From: Laetmonice hystrix
Lineage: Eukaryota
Length of the DNA: 64,000 nucleotides
Direction of reading: 5' to 3'
NCBI GenBank assembly: GCA_965235115.1
Contig: OZ249436.1
Coordinates: 27,218,001 to 27,282,000 of the forward strand
Shown here one piece after another: positions 1-14,695 of the stretch. Within the stretch, counting starts at the first letter, position 1. Each line of letters opens with the position of its first letter. The notes beneath the pieces are model-generated. The model worked only from the letters and a program-made list of their open reading frames with translations, did no database searches and was not told where the DNA came from. Made by a program: the position numbers and the translations under genes.

Positions 1-1767
1 GAGGAGGTCCCAATACAACTAGAAATACCAAGAGAGTATAAGTTCAATGCTGACAAGAGTGTAGTGATTGAGACGGAAATTGCCGAAATGATACGTAAAG
101 GTGTTATATATGAAGTGTGGGATGTCAAGCAGTCCTTTGTATCTAACATCTTCACGAGACCTAAGCCTGATGGGAAGGTCAGGGTGATTATTGACCTTAG
201 TGAGTTAATTACCTTTATCAGTAAAAAACATTTCAAGATGGACCATCTAGAGACGGCCACACAGATGATGTTTAGGGGTGCCTGGTTGGCCTCAATTGAC
301 CTTTCCGATGCGTATTATACCCTACCCATCCACCCAGACTTTCAGAGGTATCTTTGCTTCCATTGAGCAGGGAGATTTTTTCAATTCACTTGTCTCCCTT
401 TTGGTATTTCATGTGCTCCTTGGATTTTTACTAAGACGTTGAAACCCATATTTGCAGAGTTTCACAGGAAGGGCCATCATGGGTTTGGATTCATCGATGA
501 TTCCTTCATTATTGCTGAAACCCAGGAGGAGTGTTTAGCGGCGGTCAATGAATTAAAATCGTTATTTGAGAAGCTAGGGTTTAGAATAAATGAAAAGAAG
601 TCGGTCTTACACCCAACACAGGAATTGAAATTTTTGGGATATCTTCTTAATTCCTCTACCATGACAGTGAGTCCTACCCAAGAGAAAATAGAAAAAGTAG
701 TCGAGTCAGTAAAGGCGTTGGTACATTGTAGAAGGGCAAAAATCCGCAGAGTAGCGTCCGTACTTGGCTTGCTAAATGATGTGTGTAAAGCTACAGAATA
801 TGGTTTGGCACATAATAAGAATCTGGAGATCCAAAAAATTAAGGCCTTACAAAGAGCGGGCCCAAAACAGTTTGAGGGGAGCATGTATATAGGTACTGAC
901 TCTGTCACGGACCTAAAATGGTGGGAGAAGAAGTTCCCGAAAGCCTCCAAGAAAATCAGGGAGACCTCTCCAGAATTAAAGTTAATGGTTGATGCTTCTA
1001 ACTTGGGATGGGGAGCATGTTTAAATTCGAAAAGAGCCCAGGGAAGATGGTCAATGCAAGAGACCAAAGGTCATATTAACGTTCTAGAACTACGCGCAGT
1101 ACTCTTAGGCTTAAGGACTTTATGTGCTGATAAGCAGGGTACAGGTATTAGTATCCTTACGGATAGTACCACCGCGGTGGCATATGTATCCCATATGGGG
1201 GGTACCAGGTCAAGGGAGTGTAATAGAGTGGCCCTAGAAATATGGAACTGGTGTGAGCAGCAGGACATTTGGATAACGATTAACCATATCCGTGGAGTTG
1301 ATAATGCGGTAGCGGACTATGAGAGTCGTAATTTCACGGAAAACACAGAGTGGAAATTAGGTCCACACCTGTTTAACCAGATATGTACGTTGTGGGGTAC
1401 CCCCAAAATCGATTTATTTGCATCTAGGGTGAATCATCAACTTCCTAACTATGTCAGCTGGGGACCCGATCCAGGTGCATCCTTCGTCAATGCATTCTCA
1501 AGATCATGGTCGGATCTAGGTTATGTATATGCCTTTCCCCCTTTCAGGCTTCTATTGCGAGTGCTACAGAAAATCCGTCAGGACAAGGTCAAGGGTGTCG
1601 TAGTAGCTCCTGATTGGCCAGCACAACCCTGGCACAGCATTCTACATGCAAGAGCACGGTGCGTCAGGAGCGTTCCCAGGAAAGCGGGAAATCTACACAG
1701 AGTAGTCCCCGCCATCAAGGAGGACAAAACGTTAGAAGACATTCCTCTGATGTTTGCTCTGCTTTAA
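1..1767 (+). pseudogene. DIRS pol: reverse transcriptase + RNase H + Dam-like methyltransferase domain, one premature stop
   Basis: Frame is open from base 1. Motifs: RVIIDL, SIDLSDAY, LPFG..APWIFTK, FIDD, VDASNLGWG, HINVLELRA, DSTTAVAY, IDLFAS...YAFPPF. ORFs 64-366 and 439-1767 share one frame, separated by TGA at 364-366 (probably TGG Trp->TGA). Confidence 0.93.
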
Positions 1768-1784
1768 GGAATAGGATCAAACAT

Positions 1785-2751
1785 ATGGAACTACCGGAGA
1801 TAGCTATCAATCTATACATGGATTCTTGGAGACCCAATACACAAAGACAATATCGGGTCTATATAAACCAGTGGTTTACCTTTTGTACAGAAAGAGGCTG
1901 GGCAGAAACTGTCTCCAACGCTAGGCCAGGGAATAACATTTCTGACGCATTTGTTCACCAAAGGATTAACGTACAGTGCTATAAATACAGCAAGATCCAC
2001 ACTTTCCTTGATATTACCAAAGGTTGAGAACTATCAGTTTGGGAAACACCCCGTAGTATCTAGGATAATGCGGGGTATATATAACAGGAGACCACAGATG
2101 TCTCGGTACGGATCAATCTGGGATCCAGATATAGTGCTTAACTATCTGAGAGAACTGTCACCAGTGAAGAAACTAACTCTTAGAGAATTAAGCGCAAAAT
2201 TGCTGATGTTAATGCTACTAACCTCATGCCAAAGAGTCCAAACGATTTTCACGTTGATGACACGAGACAGTGTATGGTCACAGGACAAAGAAACGGCAGT
2301 ATTTAGGGTTTCATCACCACTTAAACACTCCAAGAGAGGATCTTTAGGAGTGATCCATTTCACAGCATTCGACCAGGATCCGAGACTATGTGTCGTCCGA
2401 ACACTGAAGTACTTTTTAGAGAAAACAAAAGACATTAGAGATAAGAAAAAGGAGAGACTGTTTCTCTGCACTACCCCTCCGTATGGGGAGGCTTCTAAGG
2501 CTACCCTGAGCCGGTGGGTGAAAGAAACCCTGGCAAATGCAGGTATAGATACTCGAGTCTTCAAGGCTCATAGCGTGAGGGGTTCCTCGACCTCCAAACT
2601 GTGTTCATTAGGGGTGCCTGTTGCAGAGATAATGGCAAAGGCTCAGTGGAAGACTGAGAGCACTTTCAAAATTTTCTATAACAAACCTTTGCTGCTAGAT
2701 GTATCAAAAAGGATGTTGTCAAACTTCGTTAATAAGGAGAATAAACACTAA
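1785..2751 (+). pseudogene. DIRS tyrosine recombinase with one frameshift (~1905-1912)
   Basis: ATG 1785 MELPEIAINLYMDSWRPNTQRQY... shifts frame into LSPTLGQGITFL...AINTARS. Catalytic-type motifs SCQRVQ, KHSK, HSVRG and W...TF..FY are present. Confidence 0.92.
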
Positions 2752-3145
2752 ATGACCACCTAACTATGCTGGAAGGACTGTATTGTGGTTTTCATTCGCT
2801 TTCAAATCGTGTAGTGCTGACTTTAAAGTCTCATCTGTACGCCACCTGGCGTTTCCGGACCGAAGTATAATTGAAAATTAAACGAACTTACCGTAGTGAA
2901 GTTTAATTGAGATTAGATGAGGGTAGGAAACGCCGAGGTGGTGGACAGATGACCCACCTCGGCCCTCCCTCGCTTCTGCTTCCTACTGATTGTTTCTTCT
3001 GCTCAACACTACACGATTTGCACTTTAAAGAGTGCCTGTCACTTACATGGAACGCGTTCTCATCTGTCCACCACCTCGGCGTTTCCTACCCTCATCTAAT
3101 CTCAATTAAACTTCACTACGGTAAGTTCGTTTAATTTTCAATTAT

Positions 3146-6100
3146 CACTCTGGTAAGGTTTTTCCTGTCTACCTCAACCTCCCTGAGAACGATGCGTACT
3201 AAGGTAGGTGTGGTTATTACTCAACCAGTGAGTTTGTTAGACTCTCTGCGAATTGACGGCTTCAAACGACGTTTGTTTACCGTCGCCAAGCAGTTGCTAA
3301 GGTTAACCAGTTGCTAAGGTCTCGCAGTAGTCGTCTCCATTGTGTTTTAGCATTCGTAACTTGGCCAGTTGCAAGCACAAAAGTCCTATTGGGACGATCA
3401 TGTCCAGGGTGTCTTTTGCCGTGATTTTGATTTAATCAACCATGAAAAGTTTTTCTGTTTGGGCCGGGGTAAATGGAATGGAAATGGAGTCCAGGTCTCA
3501 GCCTTCCTATCTACAGAGAAAGACTCGCTAGTTCTGGAATCTCGGGTTGAAAGGTGTCCAGTTCTTATTAACTCCTTAGATACAGCCCGTAGTAATAACC
3601 CCTCTGAAACTGGTGGTAGTTCAGAGAGAACTGTAGAATTTGTTCCCCTGTTCAAAAGTATGAAATGTTTGTTAAATTTCAGGGTCAATATCCACTTCAG
3701 CTGATGCTCGTTGCAAACGGTTCAGCTAAGCAACTTTGGTCTGTTGATCGGTCACAGGTTCGAGAACCTGAACTGGGCCGACCACAACTCGGGCCCGTCT
3801 GAAGGGCCCGGTCAACGAGGCAAAAGTATCAGCCACCACGGGCTCGAGAGCCACAGATGGCCGACCTTGAAGCTGGTCCGTCCAGCAGACCGGGTCAACG
3901 ACAGACGAACAGTTCGGCCACGGGTTCGAGAACCTCTAATGGCCCTTGAGTCGTTTGACGGACATGGCAGTCGGCCACGGGCTCGAGAGCCACAGATGGC
4001 CGACCATGACGCTGGTCGTCCAGCAGACCGGGTCAACGACAGACGAACAGTTCGGCCACGGGTTTGAGAACCTCTAATGTCCCTTGGGTCGTTTGACGGA
4101 CATGGCAGTCGGCCACGGGCTTGAGAGCCACAGATGGCCGACCATGACGCTGGTCGTCCAGTGGACCGGGTCAACGACAGACGAACAGTTAGGCCACGGG
4201 TTTGAGAACCTCTAATGGCCGCTGGGTCGTCTGACGGACATGGCAGTCGGCCACGGGCTTGAGAGCCACAGATGGCCGACCATGACGCTGGTCGTCCAGC
4301 AGACCGGGTCAACGACAGACGAACAGTTAGGCCACGGGTTTGAGAACCTCTAATGGCCGCTGGGTCGTTTGACGGACATGGCAGTCGGCCACGGGCTTGA
4401 GAGCCACAGATGGCCGACCATGACGCTGGTCGTCCAGTGGACCGGGTCAACGACGGACGAACAGTTAGGCCACGGGTTTGAGAACCTCTAATGGCCGCTG
4501 GGTCGTTTGACGGACATGGCAGTCGGCCTCGGGCTCGAGAGCCTCGGTATGCCGATGCAATTGCTGGTCCGTCTAGCAGTTTCGGTCAACGACTCACGAA
4601 CACTAGGCCAAGGGTTCGAGAACCTGAAATGACCATTGTAGACCTGGCAGTCGGCCACAGGCTCGAGAGCCTCGGTATGCCGATGGAATTGCTGGTCCAT
4701 CCTTCGAATTGGGCCAACGACACACGACTAGTAGGCCACGGGTTCGAGAACCTGAAATGACCGCTGCAAAAGTATCGGGCTCGAGAGCCACAACCTTGAC
4801 GCTGGTCTGTCCAGCGGACTGGGTCAACAGCGGACGAACAGTAGACCACGGGTTCGAGAACCGTTAATGGCCGCTGGGTCGTTTGCGGACATGACAGTTG
4901 GACACGGGATCGAGAGCCTCGGTTTACTATGGCTGGTCCGTCTGGCAGGCCTCGTTAGTGCATGCAGACGGGCAGTTGATCACAGGCTCGTGAGCCGCGG
5001 CCAGGCGTTTATTTGGGCCGCTTTACTAGTGTGTCAATGTTGCATGCTCGATCAAAAGTCCCGATTGTGGTCTCCCAGGCGAAGTCTCATGAGCCCATCT
5101 AATTACGCTAGGCCTCCCTATTAAGATAGAGATGTCTATAGGCCTCTTTGCCTGCTCATGAACTTACAAAAAAGAAATTCGGAAATCAAGCTAAGATAGA
5201 ATTTCCATGTCTCCATCCACGGTTAAAATTCCGACCGCTCCTCAAACGAGGGCGGGAAGACCGACTCTTGCTGAGGCAAAAAGATGTGCTTGATGCTCTA
5301 GCAGTTGCAGAACTCCGCTTGAGAGCGGCTCAAGCCAGTGGGCTTGTTGGCACCTGTGACTTGGGTATTTCGGATCAAGTTAAACCTGACTCTGCCTAAT
5401 TGCCATATGGGGAGATTAATCTGCAATCTGAATCAACTCTCTGTTCCTCTGAGAGAAGATTCGTACTAAAGACCCGGAACCACTGTCTTGCCCAAAGGAG
5501 AACATTTCCAATCCAGGTCTACTTTTCCAAAGCTCTCCGTAAAAAAAAAACGATTATGAGCTACATGCGGGTCCTCCGCGGCCAGGACCAACTTTAGATC
5601 CTGATGCGGAATAAGTAAAATTCAAGAGCCAGCTCAGATTTTAAGTTCTCGGCAGGCGCTTATGAATCAGGACAATAAGACAAGACTGTCAATGTCCTCA
5701 GCAATTGCTGCAGACGGGGGCAGTTCAAGAGGGAAATTTCGAACTGACCCAGCAGCGGATGACTTCAGGGCTACTAGCCTTACGACATTCGATCGAATTA
5801 TGCTGCACTTAGAAAATCTGTATATATTGAGTCATCTCGGGTTATGCTCTGAGACAGCTTCCTCTACAAGGCCATACCTTGTTTACAGGCCAGCTTCCCA
5901 TCTGCAGAGAACGTACGTTGGGGGCCAGTACAATTCGGGTTTCAGACCCTAACAAGGGAAGGCAATATTGGCTCAGATCTGACCTCCCTCAGAGAGGCAG
6001 ATTTCGAGGTCAGAGAGGTGACGGGGGTCGAACCCTAGCAATGAGGGGTCGACGCCCCTTTCGTGGGCCCTCAGCCGGCTTTCAAAATGCCGGCCACCGC

Positions 6101-9100
6101 AGGACGTTGGATCTTCCACCAGAGGGCGCAGATACTAGGGATCTCGACTCCCCAGATGGGATAGGGGAGAATCCCTTATAGGCCTAGAGGTCGGGAGACT
6201 GGAGGCTTAATTTTGGAAATTACCTGGTTGGATGGAGGAGCCTTTGATTGGTTGCCAGTCAGACTCCGGCTGCAAAACGCTCAACTCCGTTGGCAACAAC
6301 TCATAGACAGCTCAGATGATGGGTGTTGCGGAGTGTTCACAGTTCCTAAAAGACCGGAAGGTTGAGACCTGTGTTCAGTCTGAAAAGATTGAACATTTAC
6401 CCGGTAAAAGAGCCGTTTCTCATGGAAACGGTTCGGTCAGTAGTCCAGAGCTTACGAACGGGAGACTGGACTGGACGATCGATTTACGGGATGCGTATTT
6501 CTGCATGTACCAATTATCCTCATCACCTGCATCGGCTGGCAACGTCAAACAAAAGGGTACTAGTTGCAGTACTTCCCTTTGGACTGGCATCAGCCCCACG
6601 TGTTTTCACAAAATGTTGGCACCAGTGGAAGCCTTGGGTCACAAGCTGGGCATGTTACTTCACCAGTACCTCAACGATTGCCGTCTGAGGCAAGCCGACT
6701 GGGCCCAACTTTCAATCAAGCGGCTCTAAATATGCGCAACCTAGTAAGATTGGGTTGAAAGCCAATATACCCAAATGTTCCCTGACATCGCCCAGGTGTT
6801 TCTATATCGAGGGTTCAAGTGGGGTATGACATGTATGAAAGTATTTCTGATGGAGGAATGGGTCAGGAAACTGCGATATATTTCCCCAAATTCCTATCTC
6901 TGATGACAGCTCTGGATCGAATGTGGCTTCCATTTTAAGGTTTCTCAATTCGGGCAGTTTGGCAACGCAGTCAGGTCGCCTACATTTGAGGCCTCTCCAA
7001 ATGGCCTGGCTAATCACATGGAGACCACATCTCCAACCCGTAGGCCGATTCCCTGATCATTAATAATATTGAGAGTTGGTGGCTGCAATAGTCAAATTAA
7101 GGGAAGGTTGTCTTTCCGCAATCCGACTCCAGACCTGCATGTGTTTACCGACGCATCGAGCCGGAGTTGGGGAGCTCATCTTCTAATTCTGAAAGTCAGG
7201 GGCGTATGGACGTCAGACCAGAAAATCTGCACATCAGTCAGTTGGAGCTGTTGGCAATAAACTAGCCTTAGAACAGTGACAGCATTTGGTGACAAGTAAG
7301 ATAGTCATTCAGGTGCATTCAGACTATCAGTGGCAGTCAACTATTTGTTAGTCAGTTTCCCTCTTCAACTTGACGTGGGAGATCCTCTGGGGTGCAGGAA
7401 TCACCAGGTTGTTCTTCTCGTGGCACATATATACAAGGCAACCGAAACTACAAGCCCGATGCCTTATCCCGGGAATTCCGCCTCCTCTCTTCAGATTGGG
7501 CCCTCAATCGAGAAGTGGTCCGGGAGTTGTTCCATTTGGGGGAACACCTCAAATAAACTTGTTTGCCATTCCAGAGAATGCAACTACTTGCTACTGTTCA
7601 TGACTCCTATCTCGCATCCACAAGCTGTTGCGGTGGATGCGTTGTCCCACAGCTGGAGCCAATTTCAGGCCTACGCGTTTCCACCACCAATACAGTTGAC
7701 CACTTTACCTTTGCTCCTTGGTGGCCGAACCAGGTCTGGGTTGACCTCATTTTTCAATTTCTCCTGGAACGACCGAGGAAATAACCAGAAAGGCAGGATC
7801 TGTTGGGCCAAAAGGGACAGCTCGATCCCAATCACCAGCTGTTTCAGCTACACGCATTCAGATTGTCCGGACGAGATGCCGTGAAAGGGGATTTTCTCAA
7901 GAGGCAGCAGAAAGAATGTCTAGAAAACATCACTGTTCCACTAGGTCAGTTTACCAAGCCAAATGGGAAATCTTGTTAATTAGGCTAGTCAAAACGACTT
8001 AGATCATTCGTCACCGTCTATAGAGGCACTGGCAGAGTTCTTCCTGTATCTGCTCAATAAATGCTTAGCAGTGTCAACCATTAGAGGTTATAGATCGGCA
8101 ATTCTCAAACTGCTAAGGCCAGCGACGGATCGACCATTGGACTGAATCCTGCCATGTGTGTTCTGTTTAGAAATGTTGGACTCGAGAGTTCAGTGAAACT
8201 GCAGGGATCACCTGCTTGTTATTTATCCATTGTACTAGGCTGTCTTGGGAGAGAACCGTTGGAACCTTTACTTGTAGCCAACATGAAAATATGGACGCTA
8301 AAAACGGGTTTCTTTGGTTGCTCTTGCTTCGGGACGCAAGTGATCAGAAACGAACGCCCTAGGAGGTGATGATTCCGTTATTACATTCGGTCGAGGCTAC
8401 TCAGGTGTATGATTGTTCTTTGTACCGGAATTTCTGACAAAGAATCAAGACCCGTCACAATCTCCTTTTAAGATTGTTCTGCCAGTCATCGTCCCGATAA
8501 AGATAGGGAATCAAGAATCAAGGAAACAAAGGGTCAAGAATGTGTGCTCTGTCGCGTTAGGGCGTTAAGAGTGTAGCTGTATGCAACGAAAAGTATCAGA
8601 GAAGGAACATCTCGACTTCTCATTTCTTATGATAATAGGAAATTAGGTGACGTCTCTCCAGTCACAATTTTCTGCATCTTGGGCCTATTTCTATGGGATA
8701 CCTATTGTTGACATCAGCCTTTTGGAGATCTGAGACAATTTTCACAAAGTTATATTTGCGTCAGATGGGCCAGCAGACAAACAGCTTATACAGCTTGGGA
8801 ACTGTAGCCGTGGCTCAGACATTAGTCAACCCACGAGCTTAATTTTCATTTGGGCGGACTCCGGAGTCCCAAAAGTGCAGTAAGATGAATAAGAGTATTC
8901 ATTCTCATTCTCATTCTGGATGCTGGTGTTGTGTGCAGTTCACGTTCCATGGAATAATCGTGAAATTGGAATTCATCAGGGACTCAGGTGGCGTGTCTCA
9001 CTTGAATCTTAACTAAACACTATCTTGGTAAGTTGAAAACTCTCAAGGTAGTGGTTGCACCTTCACTATCTCACTGTCTAGGAACACTGAGATGACCAAA

Positions 9101-9633
9101 AAAGTCGGTGGGGGGAGTTGTAGTTGAGCCCCAGTCCAGACCTGGCATGGGTCACAAAGGCAGTTCTTCACCCGGACAACTACATTCGGGTGATTAGAAC
9201 CTGATTATATGATCATTACGCAAACCCTCCTTCCGAGCTTAGCACTCATCTCATTTAGTTATGGTGGTAAGTAATTTCATCTATGACACCAACCGTAAAG
9301 GATTAGTAGTAATCCTACTGTTGGTTAGTAGATAAATTACTTACCACCATAACATGGATTCCCTCCCGCCTCCCCACTGTTCGCGTTATGCTGGCGTCAC
9401 TACAGTGATTGATATTGGGAGTAGGGTCAATGACCTTTGACCCTCAGGGTCAATGACCTTTGACCCACCAGAGGGCGCTGGAGTAGTGGCGGTCCACTGA
9501 CCGCTAGGTGTTGACCACTGATCATTATTTAAATTCCGCCAGAGTGAACTCCGTATACAAATTATCTCATTTAGTTATGGTGGTAAGTAATTTATCTACT
9601 AACCAACAGTAGGATTACTACTAATCCTTTACG
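3146..9633 (+). mobile_element. DIRS1-like retrotransposon, copy B (different, heavily degenerate family; left terminus not visible)
   Basis: Frameshifted remnants in order: gag (~5150-6100), RT (RPVFSLKRLN, IDLRDAYF, LPFGLASAPRVFTK, YLND ~6360-6700), RNase H (VFTDASSRSWGAHL ~7140), MT (INLFA, DALSHSW..AYAFPP ~7530-7690), YR-like decay (~8000-8800). Perfect 60-bp inverted repeat 9294-9353 vs 9574-9633 marks the 3' end. Confidence 0.88.
3830..4880 (+). repeat. 138-bp (46-codon) tandem repeat inside DIRS-B 5'/gag region, ~5 conserved + ~3 degenerate units
   Basis: GACCGGGTCAACGAC recurs at 3888, 4026 and onward with 138-bp spacing, decaying after ~4500. Confidence 0.9.
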
Positions 9634-9641
9634 TTTTGCAG

Positions 9642-12600
9642 CACCTGAGATTCTAGTAGGAAAGAAGTATGGACCTGCTGTAGATATGTGGAGTGTCGGG
9701 GTTATAACCTACATATTGTAAGTATGACAATACTGTAAATCACTGTACTAAACAATACTTTTTCATCATTAAATTCAGCGTCATACAGATTCACATGAAG
9801 AATTTGTAACTGGTGTTGACTTGCTTCTATCTTCAGGTTATGTGGATATGAGCCCTTCTACTGCGATAATGAGTGTGAAATGTTCAAGAAGATTATTAAA
9901 TGTGATTTCGAATTCGATTCAACATACTGGGGTGATGTCAGTGAAAATGCAAAGGTAGATGTACATGTATTTCTGAGCACATTTCCTCTAAGAATGATCA
10001 ATCTTGTATTAACTTTCAAACTATCGGCACTGTAAATAAGTTTGAGTAAATCTACAGTGCCTATAATTTGCTCTCAGTGGCAGGTTTCTTTCTCACTCAC
10101 CCAAACACCCATTATGCCATGTCTGTTAAGGATTTCATCCGTAAACTGATGCGTAGCGACACATCGAAACGGATGACGGCACGCGAGGCGTTGGCTCATC
10201 CGTGGGTTCACCGCCAGGCGGCCAAAGTCACACATATGGAGGTTGCGCAGTCCAACCTCAAGGCGCTCAACGCACGTCGGAAGATGAAGGTCAGCAGAAA
10301 GGTTTGGTTAACACTGACTTGGATGGGGCTGGTTTTACAAATACTACTGCTGTCTCACCGCATATTTTTTAGAAATAGGACACTAAAGATAAAAGTGCAA
10401 AGTAATTGTATGTTGAAATATTGTGTACAGCAACTAGATATTTGTTTTATTTACTCATTATTTGTTTGTTTCCTTGCTGTACAAACATGCATTTCCGATC
10501 ATTCTTTGTTTGATTTGGATATGTGGGATACATGGAAAAACGGGAAAAAACATAATAAATTTACGTTTTACTCAACAATTTATAATTGCCTAAATGTGTA
10601 CATATATATTGTTTTGTGTTGTGTGTGTGGTATTTTTACTTAATATAAATATACAAAACTGTTTAAATTTGCAAGAAATTGGAGGTACCGTAAAATGTTT
10701 AATCTGTATTTGCATGATCACATGTGTCATAGGTGCTTTCATGCAAAAGAATCATAAGTTTAGAGAGTCTTGTGAAGAAAATAAAGTTCACGAGTGTGAG
10801 ATATCTCCACGTGGAAAAACAAACCTTTACTGGGAAAGAGACACTGCTCTTGTGAAGTTTCAGTCGTGTAAACCACATTGTACTGACACCGTAATACGTG
10901 CTTAGTAGTACTTAGTATGTTAAGTAAGATAGTTATAGTATTAATCCACTGAACACGATATACCGGTGTGGTGATAACCGATACAGATATAATGTAGAGG
11001 TGGTCGACAATTTCTCTCATATTTTATTATTCACCAATTCACAAAACCTAGTATAGAAGTGACTCTAATATTTAAAGGTTAAAGATCGCTCTGCCAACTT
11101 ATTTCTGAGGTGTAAAAGGAAGTCCCCAGGATAATTGTCTCAGTCCAGTGAAGGAATATGCATAAAGTATCCCAAGTACCTGATGGTTTGCATTGTGGTG
11201 AAAAATATTTTAGAAACTGCGGAGAGAAATGCAAAGTTTTCATATCGATAAACGTGATATGGAAAACTAAAATCAAATTGTGTTGCACTGCATTCTGCAA
11301 TAGAGTTTGGTTCGTTATAGTCCATAATTCCATGATAGAAGGCGAAAATTATTTTATGCATGGGAAAGATGTGCATGATTGAAACATAGAATCACCGGAG
11401 AAGACTTGTCACAACTTTTAAATGTTGCGAAAACATTGAAATGTGTTCGATGACAACTTTATATGTATTTTCCAGATCAACATGTGTGCCTTTTTTGTAA
11501 CTTTTCCCTAATCAGCATGTATACTCATATTAATAATATTCTTTCATTTCATTCACCACTAACACCATAATACGTTTCTTTTCAGATAACGGGGTACTCA
11601 TTTAAAGGGATACAGCAAGTATCCATCAATGACATACAACCTTTGTTTTGAGATAACAGGGTACATGTATTTGTTACGCGCCATCTGTGAATCTGACCCA
11701 TTTGCAAATGGGTCTGACCCAATAATGAATTCACAGATGGGTTGCCCATTTGCAACCCATCTGTGAATTCATTATTGGGTCAGACCCGTTTGCAAATGGG
11801 TCAGATTGACAACCCATCTGTGAATCTGACCCATCTATCAATCTTAATCTTTCTGAAATGGGCGATATAATTCATTATTGGGTCAGACCCGTTTGCAAAT
11901 GGGTCAGATCTGTAAATCTGACCCATCTATCAATCTTAATCTTTCTGAAATGGGCGGTATAATTCATTATTGGGTCAGACCCTTTTGCAAATGGGTCAGA
12001 TCTGTGAATCTGACCCATCTATCAATCTTTCTGAAATGGGCGATATAATTCATTATTGGGTCAGACCCGTTTGCAAATGGGTCAGATCTGTGAATCTGAC
12101 CCATCTATCAATCTTGTTTGTTCATGAAGGAGTAAAAGTTTTAATAGCAACTTTAATAGCAACTAATGCAATGTGTGCCCCTGACTGCATGGATGACTTG
12201 GCTTGGTAAGACATTCGACTGACTACAAATAATCAGGGATGAAAGTTTTCAGGAAATTTCCTGAAATCAGGAAATTTGAAAAAATCCCCCCCCCCCAAGA
12301 AATAACACCCAAAAAAGGAAATAGGCCTAGATCTATAGGCAAAAGAGGTAGGCCTAAGCCAAGGCTAAGTATTGCCCTGGACTGTGTGGTGGGCAATTAA
12401 TATCAAATGAAACAATATCCCCTTCCAGGACGTTTTTTAACACCATGCAGCTCAATATATCTCTACCTGCCAAAGTTCGTTTATAGATGGGGATATTAGA
12501 GTGTCTCAAACCCGTTCAGTGTCACGGGTGCCACCGTGCATAGGCCGGTCTGCCGGGGGTGCTGGTCCCTGTAGCTGTGGTGACATCGCTCACATAGACC

Positions 12601-14695
12601 GGCCCGCGTGGGCTGACTTCTACCGGCACGCGGTGGCGTCTGTCCCGTCTGGCAGGCACGGCCCCGTGTCGCTGTGGTGAGAGCGACTCACCTCAGGTAA
12701 TGACTTCAGGCAAAATTGATGGTCAGGCAGCTGCGAAGCCCGTTGATTCAGGCTTGCCATTATGCCATATCCATGCGCGAGTTTTGCCTGAGCGCTCACT
12801 TAGTGAACGAGACTATAGTATAGACAGACCGGTCTGTCTAGTCCCGGCGTTGGTGATAGTGATTAGGCTGACGAACTATGCACCATCACAATGTCACTCC
12901 TCACAGGAAACTGGGTCAATTTAGTTCTATGAATCTGCCTAGTATATATGTCAGTAAGTTCTCATAATGTGTTCTTGCATATAAATTTGAGTTTAGTGGC
13001 ATTACGTAAGTGGTTTTCACTGAAGTTTTGGGGTTGTCAGGACTTTTCATTACATTTGTGGATCAGTGCAGGTGTCCTGATAAGACCGGAAGTGACAATT
13101 TTCACAACAACATGAGTGGCACATGGACACACGGGCTGAACCACTCGACTCAGCAAAGCCTGTATTGCTTGGCTGAGAGCCGCTGAGGGTCGTGACTGCT
13201 GAGGGTCAAGACTGATGGACAGCCTGTGTGGTCAGTCTAACACATGGAAGCTGTTTGACAACGTAATCGGTTGCATTTTGGACGCTAAAAGCCGACTGGA
13301 TTCCAATGTTGGAGAGAGACGGCAGAGCCAGGCAGAGGTTGACAGTGAGTGACAGGCAAGCAACAGCCTTGAACAGGGGCATGGACTGATGAGTGATGGA
13401 GTCTATCCAGCAAATTTGCAGGGGTGGGGGGTTGACGGGGTGGGGGTGGGTGGGGGGGGGGGGGTGGCGACTAAATACTGAGGGCTAGGCCCTATAATAT
13501 ATAATAGCTAGGAGGCCTTATCGGATCATGATTGTCTGCTGTTCCTAGCCGGACTTTTTTTAAGGGGGGGGGGGGGTAAGCCTTGGATGTGCGCATGAAC
13601 AAATATTAATTATGGACATTGGCCCCCGCCGCTTCCCCCCGGTCAGAATTTCAGGAAATTTTACAGCTGGCCACTTTCATCCCTGAATAATGGTCTGGGC
13701 ATCATTTAAAACGGGAATTAGGTTCCGATCAAGAAGATTCCTCAATTTCAAATCTGCAGCTATAGACTCTATCCGTAATATCCATCTGTCAATCTCGATC
13801 TATCTGAAATGGGTGAATGAAATAGAGTCTGGGGTTTCGATGTTTCATTAACCTCCCCCCCCCCCCTTTAAAGAGCCACTTTAACTCATGTGCAAACTGA
13901 GACAAAATGTGACACGTGCGACAGCCGCCTGTTGCCGCCAAAAACGGCAATTCTGCTAGGGCCTATAATATGATAGTTTAGCTAGTGATGCGTACCAAAC
14001 CTTGAAAAACCCATGTTTTTTTAAACAATCCATCACAAGCATACGTTTTGACATGTGGTCGGATAGCGGGAAAGAGACTCACTCTATGAGCACGTGGAAA
14101 TGAATGGGCAATAAAGAATAAATAACGTTTTGAACTTGCCACTTATTTGTTCTGTATACCTCTTCTGCATTGTCGAGTCATTCATTATCGGGTCAGACCC
14201 ATTTGTAAATGGGACACACTTTGCCACGTTTTGGCATTCACAGATGGGTTGCCCATTTGCAAATGGGCAACCCATCTGTGAATTCATTATTGGGTGAGAC
14301 CCATTTGCAAATGGGTCAGATTCACAGATGGCGCGTAACATATTCATTTAAACGGATATAGCAAGTATCCACCAATGACATACAATCAGTATCCCGATCG
14401 TAGCTCTGATGTTATGAATACGTTGGCCTAAATCTTTGGTATGGCAATGGCCGTTAATCTGAGAAAAGTGTATCTGAATTTGTGAAAGGAAACGACGTTC
14501 CGATGACAACGTTGACGTCCTTGAGGTGTCGGGCCTGGAAGGCAGAGTTCGTCCTGTGATGTTGTTATTTATTGTTTACAGGGGGCCACTGCAGCAGTCA
14601 TGGCCTGTAATATGTTTCTCGCCAAACCCGGCGGTCTGCTAGTACCCAGCCCTGCTCCTCCGGCTCAACCAGACGCCCAAGTCAAGTCATCCTGA
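9642..14695 (+). CDS. CAMK4: Ca2+/calmodulin-dependent protein kinase IV-like, 3' four exons (5' exons upstream of window)
   Basis: GT-AG exons 9642-9717 (APEILVGKKYGPAVDMWSVGVITYIL), 9837-9954 (LCGYEPFY...WGDVSENAK), 10131-10289 (DFIRKLM...HPWV...NARRKMK), 14582-14695 (GATAAVMAC...KSS*). Phases are consistent. AATAAA at 14791. Closer to CaMKIV than CaMKI by eye. Confidence 0.85.
11672..14340. mobile_element. Non-autonomous TIR element with TGT...ACA ends and 4-bp TSD (Ginger-like), in kinase intron
   Basis: ~84-bp TIR TGTTACGCGCCATCTGTGAATCTGACCC... with 1 mismatch. TSD TATT at 11668-11671 and 14341-14344. Internal palindrome GACCCATTTGCAAATGGGTC and ~90-bp subterminal repeats at 11820-12115. 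Confidence 0.75.
12234..13685. mobile_element. hAT-like TIR element with 6-bp TSD nested in the Ginger-like element
   Basis: TIR CAGGGATGAAAGT / ACTTTCATCCCTG; TSD AATAAT on both sides. Internal GC-richer sequence is not confidently translatable. Confidence 0.7.

Follow-up and report, generated by a model that had tools for sequence, protein, structure and literature searches.

How a coding exon can be spliced when a retrotransposon ends a few nucleotides (nt) ahead of it is the question raised by a 64,000-nt stretch of the genome of Laetmonice hystrix (assembly GCA_965235115.1, contig OZ249436.1, positions 27,218,001 to 27,282,000, forward strand). In this stretch, here called the window, an element of DIRS1-like architecture, element A, stops directly in front of exon 9 of a gene that by its sequence is CaMKIV, and the native branch point has been displaced, with the greater part of the native pyrimidine tract, to 11.75 kb upstream. 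The acceptor AG at 9640-9641 can be used by the allele with the insertion, here called the carrier allele, only with a branch adenosine inside element A, a conclusion that is logical in kind and forced by the geometry of the locus. Whether the carrier allele yields a useful amount of correctly spliced RNA, with the transposon terminus as signal, is a question that we consider evenly balanced. Positions without prefix are those of the window, and positions with a contig prefix such as C1 or C12 are those of the genome.

The acceptor of CaMKIV exon 9

Read directly, the acceptor region runs from ...GGATTACTACTAATCCTTTACG, ending at 9633, through TTT (9634-9636) and TGCAG (9637-9641) into exon 9 at 9642. 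Its features are the following.

9391-9608, + strand: right inverted terminal repeat (ITR) of element A, the inverse of C1:27215883-27216102 at 97%; holds G/GTAAGT at 9582-9589 and TACTAAC
9609-9633, + strand: right extension of element A; holds TACTAAT and the CCTTTACG part of the tract; the same in all copies and complementary to the internal complementary region (ICR)
9634-9636, + strand: TTT, the recombination trinucleotide of the right junction; common to the element copies and probably to the target too; found in 13 of 14 copies
9637-9641, + strand: native TGCAG, which includes the acceptor AG (9640-9641) of CaMKIV intron 8; the flank occurs once in the genome and the gene model is GT-AG
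9642-9717, + strand: CaMKIV coding exon 9, 76 nt, APEILVGKKYGPAVDMWSVGVITYIL, kinase subdomains VIII-IX; supported by translation and by RNA in which 9654-9717 is joined to 9837

A preliminary description of this DNA had a DIRS1-like element ending at 9633 just before a kinase coding exon (9642-9717) with the motif APEIL. The region was read here in the same way, the architecture of the element matches, and translation and gene model identify the exon as exon 9 of a single-copy CaMKIV orthologue. The exon opens with G/CA CCT GAG ATT CTA, which gives APEIL, the donor GTAAGT follows after 9717, and skipping of its 76 nt would give a frameshift. The gap of 8 nt that had been given between element and exon is correct if the element is taken to end at 9633, where the complementarity between terminus and ICR ends, but becomes 5 nt if TTT is counted as element. 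The right ends read ...CCTTTACGTTT in 13 of 14 genomic copies, with divergence right after, and family homology thereby extends up to 9636. By the assignment of TTT, the number of native bases left beside exon 9 is 5 to 8.

These 5 to 8 bases are too near the AG to hold a branch point, which leaves splicing of the carrier allele to this acceptor with no adenosines but those inside element A. On its left, element A is flanked by native intron that ends ...AATTGCTCAGGGTGTTTACTT. Rejoined to (TTT)TGCAG, this flank gives the native acceptor with a T-run, and for this reason the insertion is placed in the pyrimidine tract. The displacement of the native branch point, as it had been proposed, is borne out by the present position of the native intron end far upstream.

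Two candidate branch points lie in the terminus. The motif TACTAAT is found at 9619-9625, and its branch adenosine, A9624, lies 17 nt ahead of the acceptor's G and sits in a 6/7 match to TACTAAC; the motif had been noticed before, though at 9618-9624. A perfect TACTAAC (7/7) occupies 9597-9603 with its branch adenosine, A9602, 39 nt from the AG, and the two motifs are equally good candidates. No other 7/7 or 6/7 match to the branch consensus is found in the CaMKIV gene than these two at -39 and -17 of the present acceptor. The acceptor has 12 pyrimidines in the 17 positions from -20 to -4, in a tract that is mostly element, and the other CaMKIV introns have 9-15, whereas the reconstructed native acceptor has 11 of 17 and a best branch match of 5/7. 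On paper, the new acceptor would thus be at least as good as the other ten of the gene.

Adaptation to the CaMKIV locus is not what these motifs reflect, since they are a fixed part of every family A terminus. In the window as a whole, TACTAAY on both strands was observed 14 times against 16.3 expected, which is no general enrichment. The TACTAA motifs sit inside the small palindromes CTACT..AGTAG and GGATTA..TAATCC, which are kept in all family copies and serve the element, not the gene.

The host gene is, as judged from its sequence, a CaMKIV orthologue in single copy, and neither a haplotig nor a paralogue of the locus was found in the assembly. Its exons were assembled with the sequences of relatives as guides, giving a model of 12 coding exons from C1:27204898 to 14695 of the window, with GT-AG at all 11 introns and an intact open reading frame (ORF) of 337 amino acids. 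Over its full length the model is 64-67% identical to invertebrate proteins named CaMKIV by their sources. It has a complete kinase domain with all exons open and with the motifs GRGASSVV, AVK, HRDLKPEN and APE, and the best PDB match of exon 11 is human CaMKIV (2w4o, E 6.6e-11), followed by CaMKII (2e-7) and CaMKI (1e-4). In the activation loop DLG replaces DFG (exon 8, C1:27215402-27215410), DFG being found in the relative described below and in the other orthologues examined.

Exon 8 ends with ...GTPGYC+G at C1:27215474 and the donor GTGAGT. Intron 8 is a phase-1 intron that extends from C1:27215475 to 9641 of the window and measures 12,167 nt, of which 11,753 nt are nested elements; without them it would be about 415 nt. 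The same phase-1 intron in a relative (ENA contig, locus L029) is about 440 nt long and ends in CTTAAC and a long pyrimidine run, with the orthologous exon 9 at 7597-7673. This distant relative provided the sole empty-site comparison, a sequencing run of another organism (X6) having given no alignment to the window.

The nested DIRS1-like elements

Where the preliminary description had a single element, intron 8 holds a nested pair, and its start lies outside the window. Element A begins at C1:27215883, 2.1 kb ahead of the window, and is interrupted by element B.

1-3143, + strand: window part of element B, DIRS1-like, inside element A; the whole element is C1:27216171-27221143, 4,973 nt (window -1829 to 3143)
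3144-9633, + strand: body of element A, decayed DIRS1-like, sense to CaMKIV; 96.6% collinear with the copy at C1:33838773-33845263
9248-9353, + strand: ICRs of element A, inverted and direct repeat pairs; they match canonical copy positions 1239-1284 and 7665-7727

The first 289 nt of element A, which form the left ITR, are at C1:27215883-27216171, and a canonical copy of the family measures 6.49 kb. [quoted passage not shown] A genome search with window 9200-9700 returned the same ITR layout in at least 8 other copies, with the ITRs about 6.4-6.6 kb apart, and family A copies are 96.8-98.7% alike. All of 7 left ends read GTT, mostly with a T before it, and no target-site duplication was found at four paired flanks. 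Insertion of DIRS1-like elements at short T-rich sites without such a duplication had been given as background in the preliminary description, with the polypyrimidine tract as the site here; the flanks of the present copy likewise carry no duplication, and the T-rich site is the T-run in the pyrimidine tract of a real acceptor.

No long ORF was found in the 4 copies of the family examined, and Pfam returned nothing significant for ten open fragments of element A, with no recombinase recognised. Remnants of reverse transcriptase (RT; LPFGLASAPRVFTK), RNase H (TDASSRSWGA) and a methyltransferase (MT)-like sequence match element B in short, weak alignments (tblastx E 2e-4). By its architecture together with these weak matches, element A is assigned to the DIRS1-like retrotransposons. 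In the model of these elements, ITRs are combined with ICRs that overlap on a 3-bp circular junction, a right extension and NTT termini (PMC3266345), and integration proceeds by recombination of the 3-bp junction with a matching genomic trinucleotide, without target-site duplication (PMC3266345). SkoDIRS2, for example, has the termini GTT/GTT and the junction AAC (Piednoel et al. 2011, PMC3266345). Element A shares with such elements the ITRs, two ICRs on a 3-bp AAC junction, a right extension of about 25 nt, NTT termini, integration without duplication and the RT-RNase H-MT remnants. Unlike SkoDIRS2, it has TTT at the right against GTT at the left, no intact ORF in the copies examined and no recognised recombinase, and it contains a nested DIRS1-like element, B.

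The 5' region of element A also contains a 138-nt tandem array of 6 or more units, up to 96% alike, at 3741-4706, which is present in the canonical copy too. An RNA contig of run X4 over 9248-9293 crosses the left junction of another family A copy, with a flank that matches the copy at C12:25033899, and at least one copy of the family is therefore transcribed past its end.

Element B interrupts element A between canonical positions of about 1532 and 1541. Its ORFs with RT, Dam-like MT and tyrosine-recombinase domains are at 439-2751, and the Pfam scores of RVT_1 (32.6 bits) and Phage_integrase (27.6 bits) are both over the cut-offs, that of Dam being weak. The inverted repeat between ICR and terminus is perfect over 86 nt (2867-2952 / 3060-3145). 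The place in element A that B occupies reads GAGA-ATT-ATCAC; ATT stands at both junctions of element B (the right one at 3141-3143) and AAT in the ICR of B, in agreement with the published 3-bp integration model without target-site duplication (PMC3266345). Since five other copies are 99% identical to it over 3.1 kb, element B is young; it is apparently intact, and its family may still be active. Both elements are oriented like the CaMKIV gene. The landing of B within another DIRS element is improbable by chance, as copies of A make up about 0.02% of the genome. A perfect G/GTAAGT is found near the right end of both DIRS families (9582-9589 in A, 3120-3127 in B), and in element A it is followed by TACTAAC and CAG inside 27 nt, a string that resembles a mini-intron.

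Element A thus entered the T-run in the pyrimidine tract of intron 8 by tyrosine-recombinase recombination that left no target duplication. The young element B inserted later into A, and the intron grew from about 415 to 12,167 nt. The right extension and the end of the ITR would by chance have supplied near-perfect signals in the form of A9624 at -17, A9602 at -39 and the tract CCTTTACGTTTT, and on these grounds the carrier allele is probably still spliced correctly, with the insertion tolerated.

Alleles, transcripts and rival explanations

The evidence from reads consists of contigs of one sample, in which X4 behaves as RNA and X1 and X3 as DNA. The RNA involves three further exons of the gene.

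9837-9954, + strand: CaMKIV coding exon 10; RNA joint from 9717 to 9837 with GT..AG, and translation
10131-10289, + strand: CaMKIV coding exon 11, which closes the kinase domain and encodes the autoinhibitory/calmodulin-binding segment; RNA joint from 9951-9954 to 10128-10131
14582-14695, + strand: last coding exon of CaMKIV, up to the stop; the end of the RNA contig past 10290 matches 14583-14612 exactly, and translation

An X4 contig of 696 nt covers 9654-9717, 9837-9951/4 and 10128/31-10290 with GT..AG joints and continues into the last exon at 14582. Exon 9 is included in mRNA, as this contig joins 9654-9717 to exons 10, 11 and 12. The check that had been suggested was RNA inclusion of exon 9 in carriers against non-carriers; the contig shows inclusion from 9654 on, in an mRNA that could come from either allele. 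An alternative acceptor as the cause of the contig's start at 9654 was considered and rejected, since use of the AGs at 9648-9649, 9655-9656 or 9658-9659 would make the paths converge at 9649, 9656 or 9659. Among the RNA contigs, none runs from element A into exon 9, and none joins exon 8 to exon 10, though the upstream part lay outside the aligned stretch. Searches with exon 11 and with the relative's region for a spliced CaMKIV protein or transcript of the species itself returned nothing above 70% identity to the model.

The DNA contigs break at the element boundary. The X1 contig of the unique flank starts exactly at 9634, and the X3 contig aligns from 9634 and has in addition 30-33 letters unlike the element. 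From the carrier allele and the other family copies alone, the first unique 31-mer would start at 9609. The break at 9633/9634 therefore points to a second allele that has TTTTGCAG... but differs at 9633, as an empty site does. At 10729, 10843 and 11305, too, X3 departs from the assembly, and for this reason the animal is regarded as heterozygous in the region. It is probably heterozygous for the insertion itself and carries an empty allele as well. For the empty-site alleles that the preliminary description had named as a check, the sample in this way gives the break expected of one; the reconstructed empty site had 0 matches in JGI metagenome contigs, which is uninformative. Because the animal seems to carry the empty allele too, the insertion is probably a segregating polymorphism.

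Several observations weigh against correct splicing of the carrier allele. Given the probable empty allele, the mRNA could come from that allele alone, and the X4 contig, which could belong to either allele, starts 12 nt inside exon 9, short of the junction between exons 8 and 9. At 10226, in exon 11, this mRNA contig reads G, against A in the assembly and in both DNA contigs (a synonymous change of the Lys codon AAA to AAG), which hints that the majority of mature mRNA derives from the other haplotype. The difference is more likely an allelic single-nucleotide polymorphism than RNA editing, given its synonymous position and the absence of any inverted repeat in its vicinity. Element A also supplies a strong 5' splice-site-like GTG/GTAAGT 58 nt upstream, and the AGs at 9608-9609 and 9611-9612, 6-10 nt past A9602, precede the true AG; either could divert splicing, though the two AGs are probably too near A9602 for use. 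Finally, exon skipping is the usual result when a retrotransposon inserts into an acceptor pyrimidine tract, and in NF1 it followed in 3 of 3 cases (PMC3219598). As to the G at 10226, an allele dropped from the DNA contigs and another individual are further possible sources.

These points are accommodated by a carrier allele that is splicing-defective, either null or hypomorphic, in which exon 9 is skipped or mis-spliced, the mRNA comes from the empty allele and the TACTAA motifs are by-products of the palindromes. Such an allele is possible, although we lean towards doubting it. The break at 9633/9634 and the run of X3 into unlike sequence suggest that the empty allele was in the sample, and the motifs lie in palindromes kept in all copies for the element's own reasons. 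After Alu insertions at acceptor pyrimidine tracts the following exon is skipped (PMC3219598). In an intronic RNA contig (10804-10954), position 10843 has the A of the assembly allele, and the carrier haplotype therefore seems to be transcribed past the insertion; a non-assembly base in the mRNA at 10226 and an assembly base in intronic RNA at 10843 are what a transcribed but poorly matured carrier allele is expected to give. A carrier allele that is transcribed but adds less to mature mRNA would fit; these allele calls, however, come from one contig each at depths of 18 and 8, are not significant and would arise by chance about 1 time in 4. Sequence criteria also put the new acceptor level with or above the other ten, and the joint of exon 8 to exon 10 expected of skipping is absent from the RNA contigs within the part that they cover. 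A strongly deleterious or recessive lethal allele should moreover be young and rare, whereas the present one has had time for a nested insertion. The carrier allele is old enough to have received a second insertion, though element B itself is young, and this counts in favour of correct splicing.

Even if the carrier acceptor is used, the branch point could be A9602 of TACTAAC, 39 nt from the AG, or an adenosine deeper in the element in place of the TACTAAT adenosine. TACTAAC is a 7/7 match at a typical distance, and TACTAAT is a 6/7 match at the rather short distance of 17 nt. The intervening AGs named above stand in the way of A9602, whereas the path from A9624 to the acceptor is free of other AG, and we hold this variant to be unlikely. 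Far less probable still is an assembly artefact in which the element was misjoined to the kinase exon and the true locus is empty. The short-read contigs show no visible bridge over 9633/9634 in the alignments examined, but both junctions are clean and fit the integration rule of the family (T/GTT... at the left, ...ACG TTT at the right). The left flank continues from the exon 8 donor at a length that is right for the orthologous intron, and the flank is unique in the genome, a combination not to be expected of a chimera.

Related systems and wider bearing

It is already well known that transposable elements can destroy splice signals or supply them, and an insertion between branch point and AG is a textbook splice-killing mutation. 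To our knowledge, a DIRS terminus that destroys or donates splice signals for a constitutive exon has not been described, no literature search having been made. If the carrier allele is spliced normally, the locus would be a clean natural example of a retrotransposon end standing in for the branch point and for most of the pyrimidine tract of a constitutive exon, in a signalling kinase that is conserved and single-copy. If the allele is defective, it would be a natural loss-of-function allele of CaMKIV. One species would allow both the carrier and the empty allele to be compared, as the insertion seems to be segregating. Either outcome concerns one locus and amounts to a single-locus curiosity of a known kind.

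The Alu and L1 insertions into the pyrimidine tract or the AG of 3' splice sites of NF1 (PMC3219598) resemble the present case in that a retroelement lies a few bases from the acceptor, between branch point and AG. In the NF1 cases the downstream exon was skipped and disease resulted, whereas here the inserted end bears branch-point motifs and a usable tract and the exon is found in mRNA that may come from either allele. The exonisation of Alu and L1 (PMC2176070) is similar in that a transposable element gives splice signals in cis by chance resemblance, there the pyrimidine tract and the AG. Exonisation, however, creates new and mostly alternative exons within introns, whereas here the element would replace the branch point and tract of an existing constitutive coding exon in a conserved gene.

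The right end of family A, with G/GTAAGT, TACTAAC, TACTAAT and a pyrimidine run, might act as a portable 3' splice-site cassette, an extension that we judge quite improbable. Targeting of T-runs would bring family A to acceptor tracts, where the copies would be neutral by replacing the signals that they displace. Of the 14 family A right ends, two are found no more than 53 nt ahead of the acceptor of a conserved gene (CaMKIV in one case, EDC3 in the other), both in sense, where about 0.1 would be expected. Among the other family A copies, acceptor-like flanks were found at none but the EDC3 copy. That copy ends 53 nt upstream of the EDC3 acceptor, in sense (L002:1087-1501, C1:33838359-33838773, minus strand), and the exon near it is the last coding exon of the EDC3 orthologue, with a YjeF_N-like C-terminal domain (PDB 3d3k, E 3e-32).

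The CaMKIV protein itself is similar to human CAMK4 (PDB 2w4o) in having a kinase domain followed by an autoinhibitory/calmodulin-binding segment (NARRKxK). Its best matches are CaMKIV across animals, and the length and exon structure of the gene fit invertebrate orthologues. Vertebrate CaMKIV has a long acidic tail, whereas the present protein is short (337 amino acids), lacks this tail and has DLG for DFG. Further downstream, intron 11 of the gene contains a cluster of tandem and inverted repeats of about 90 nt at 11678-12115, a palindromic unit like that of a miniature inverted-repeat transposable element, at the start of which the short-read contigs stop.

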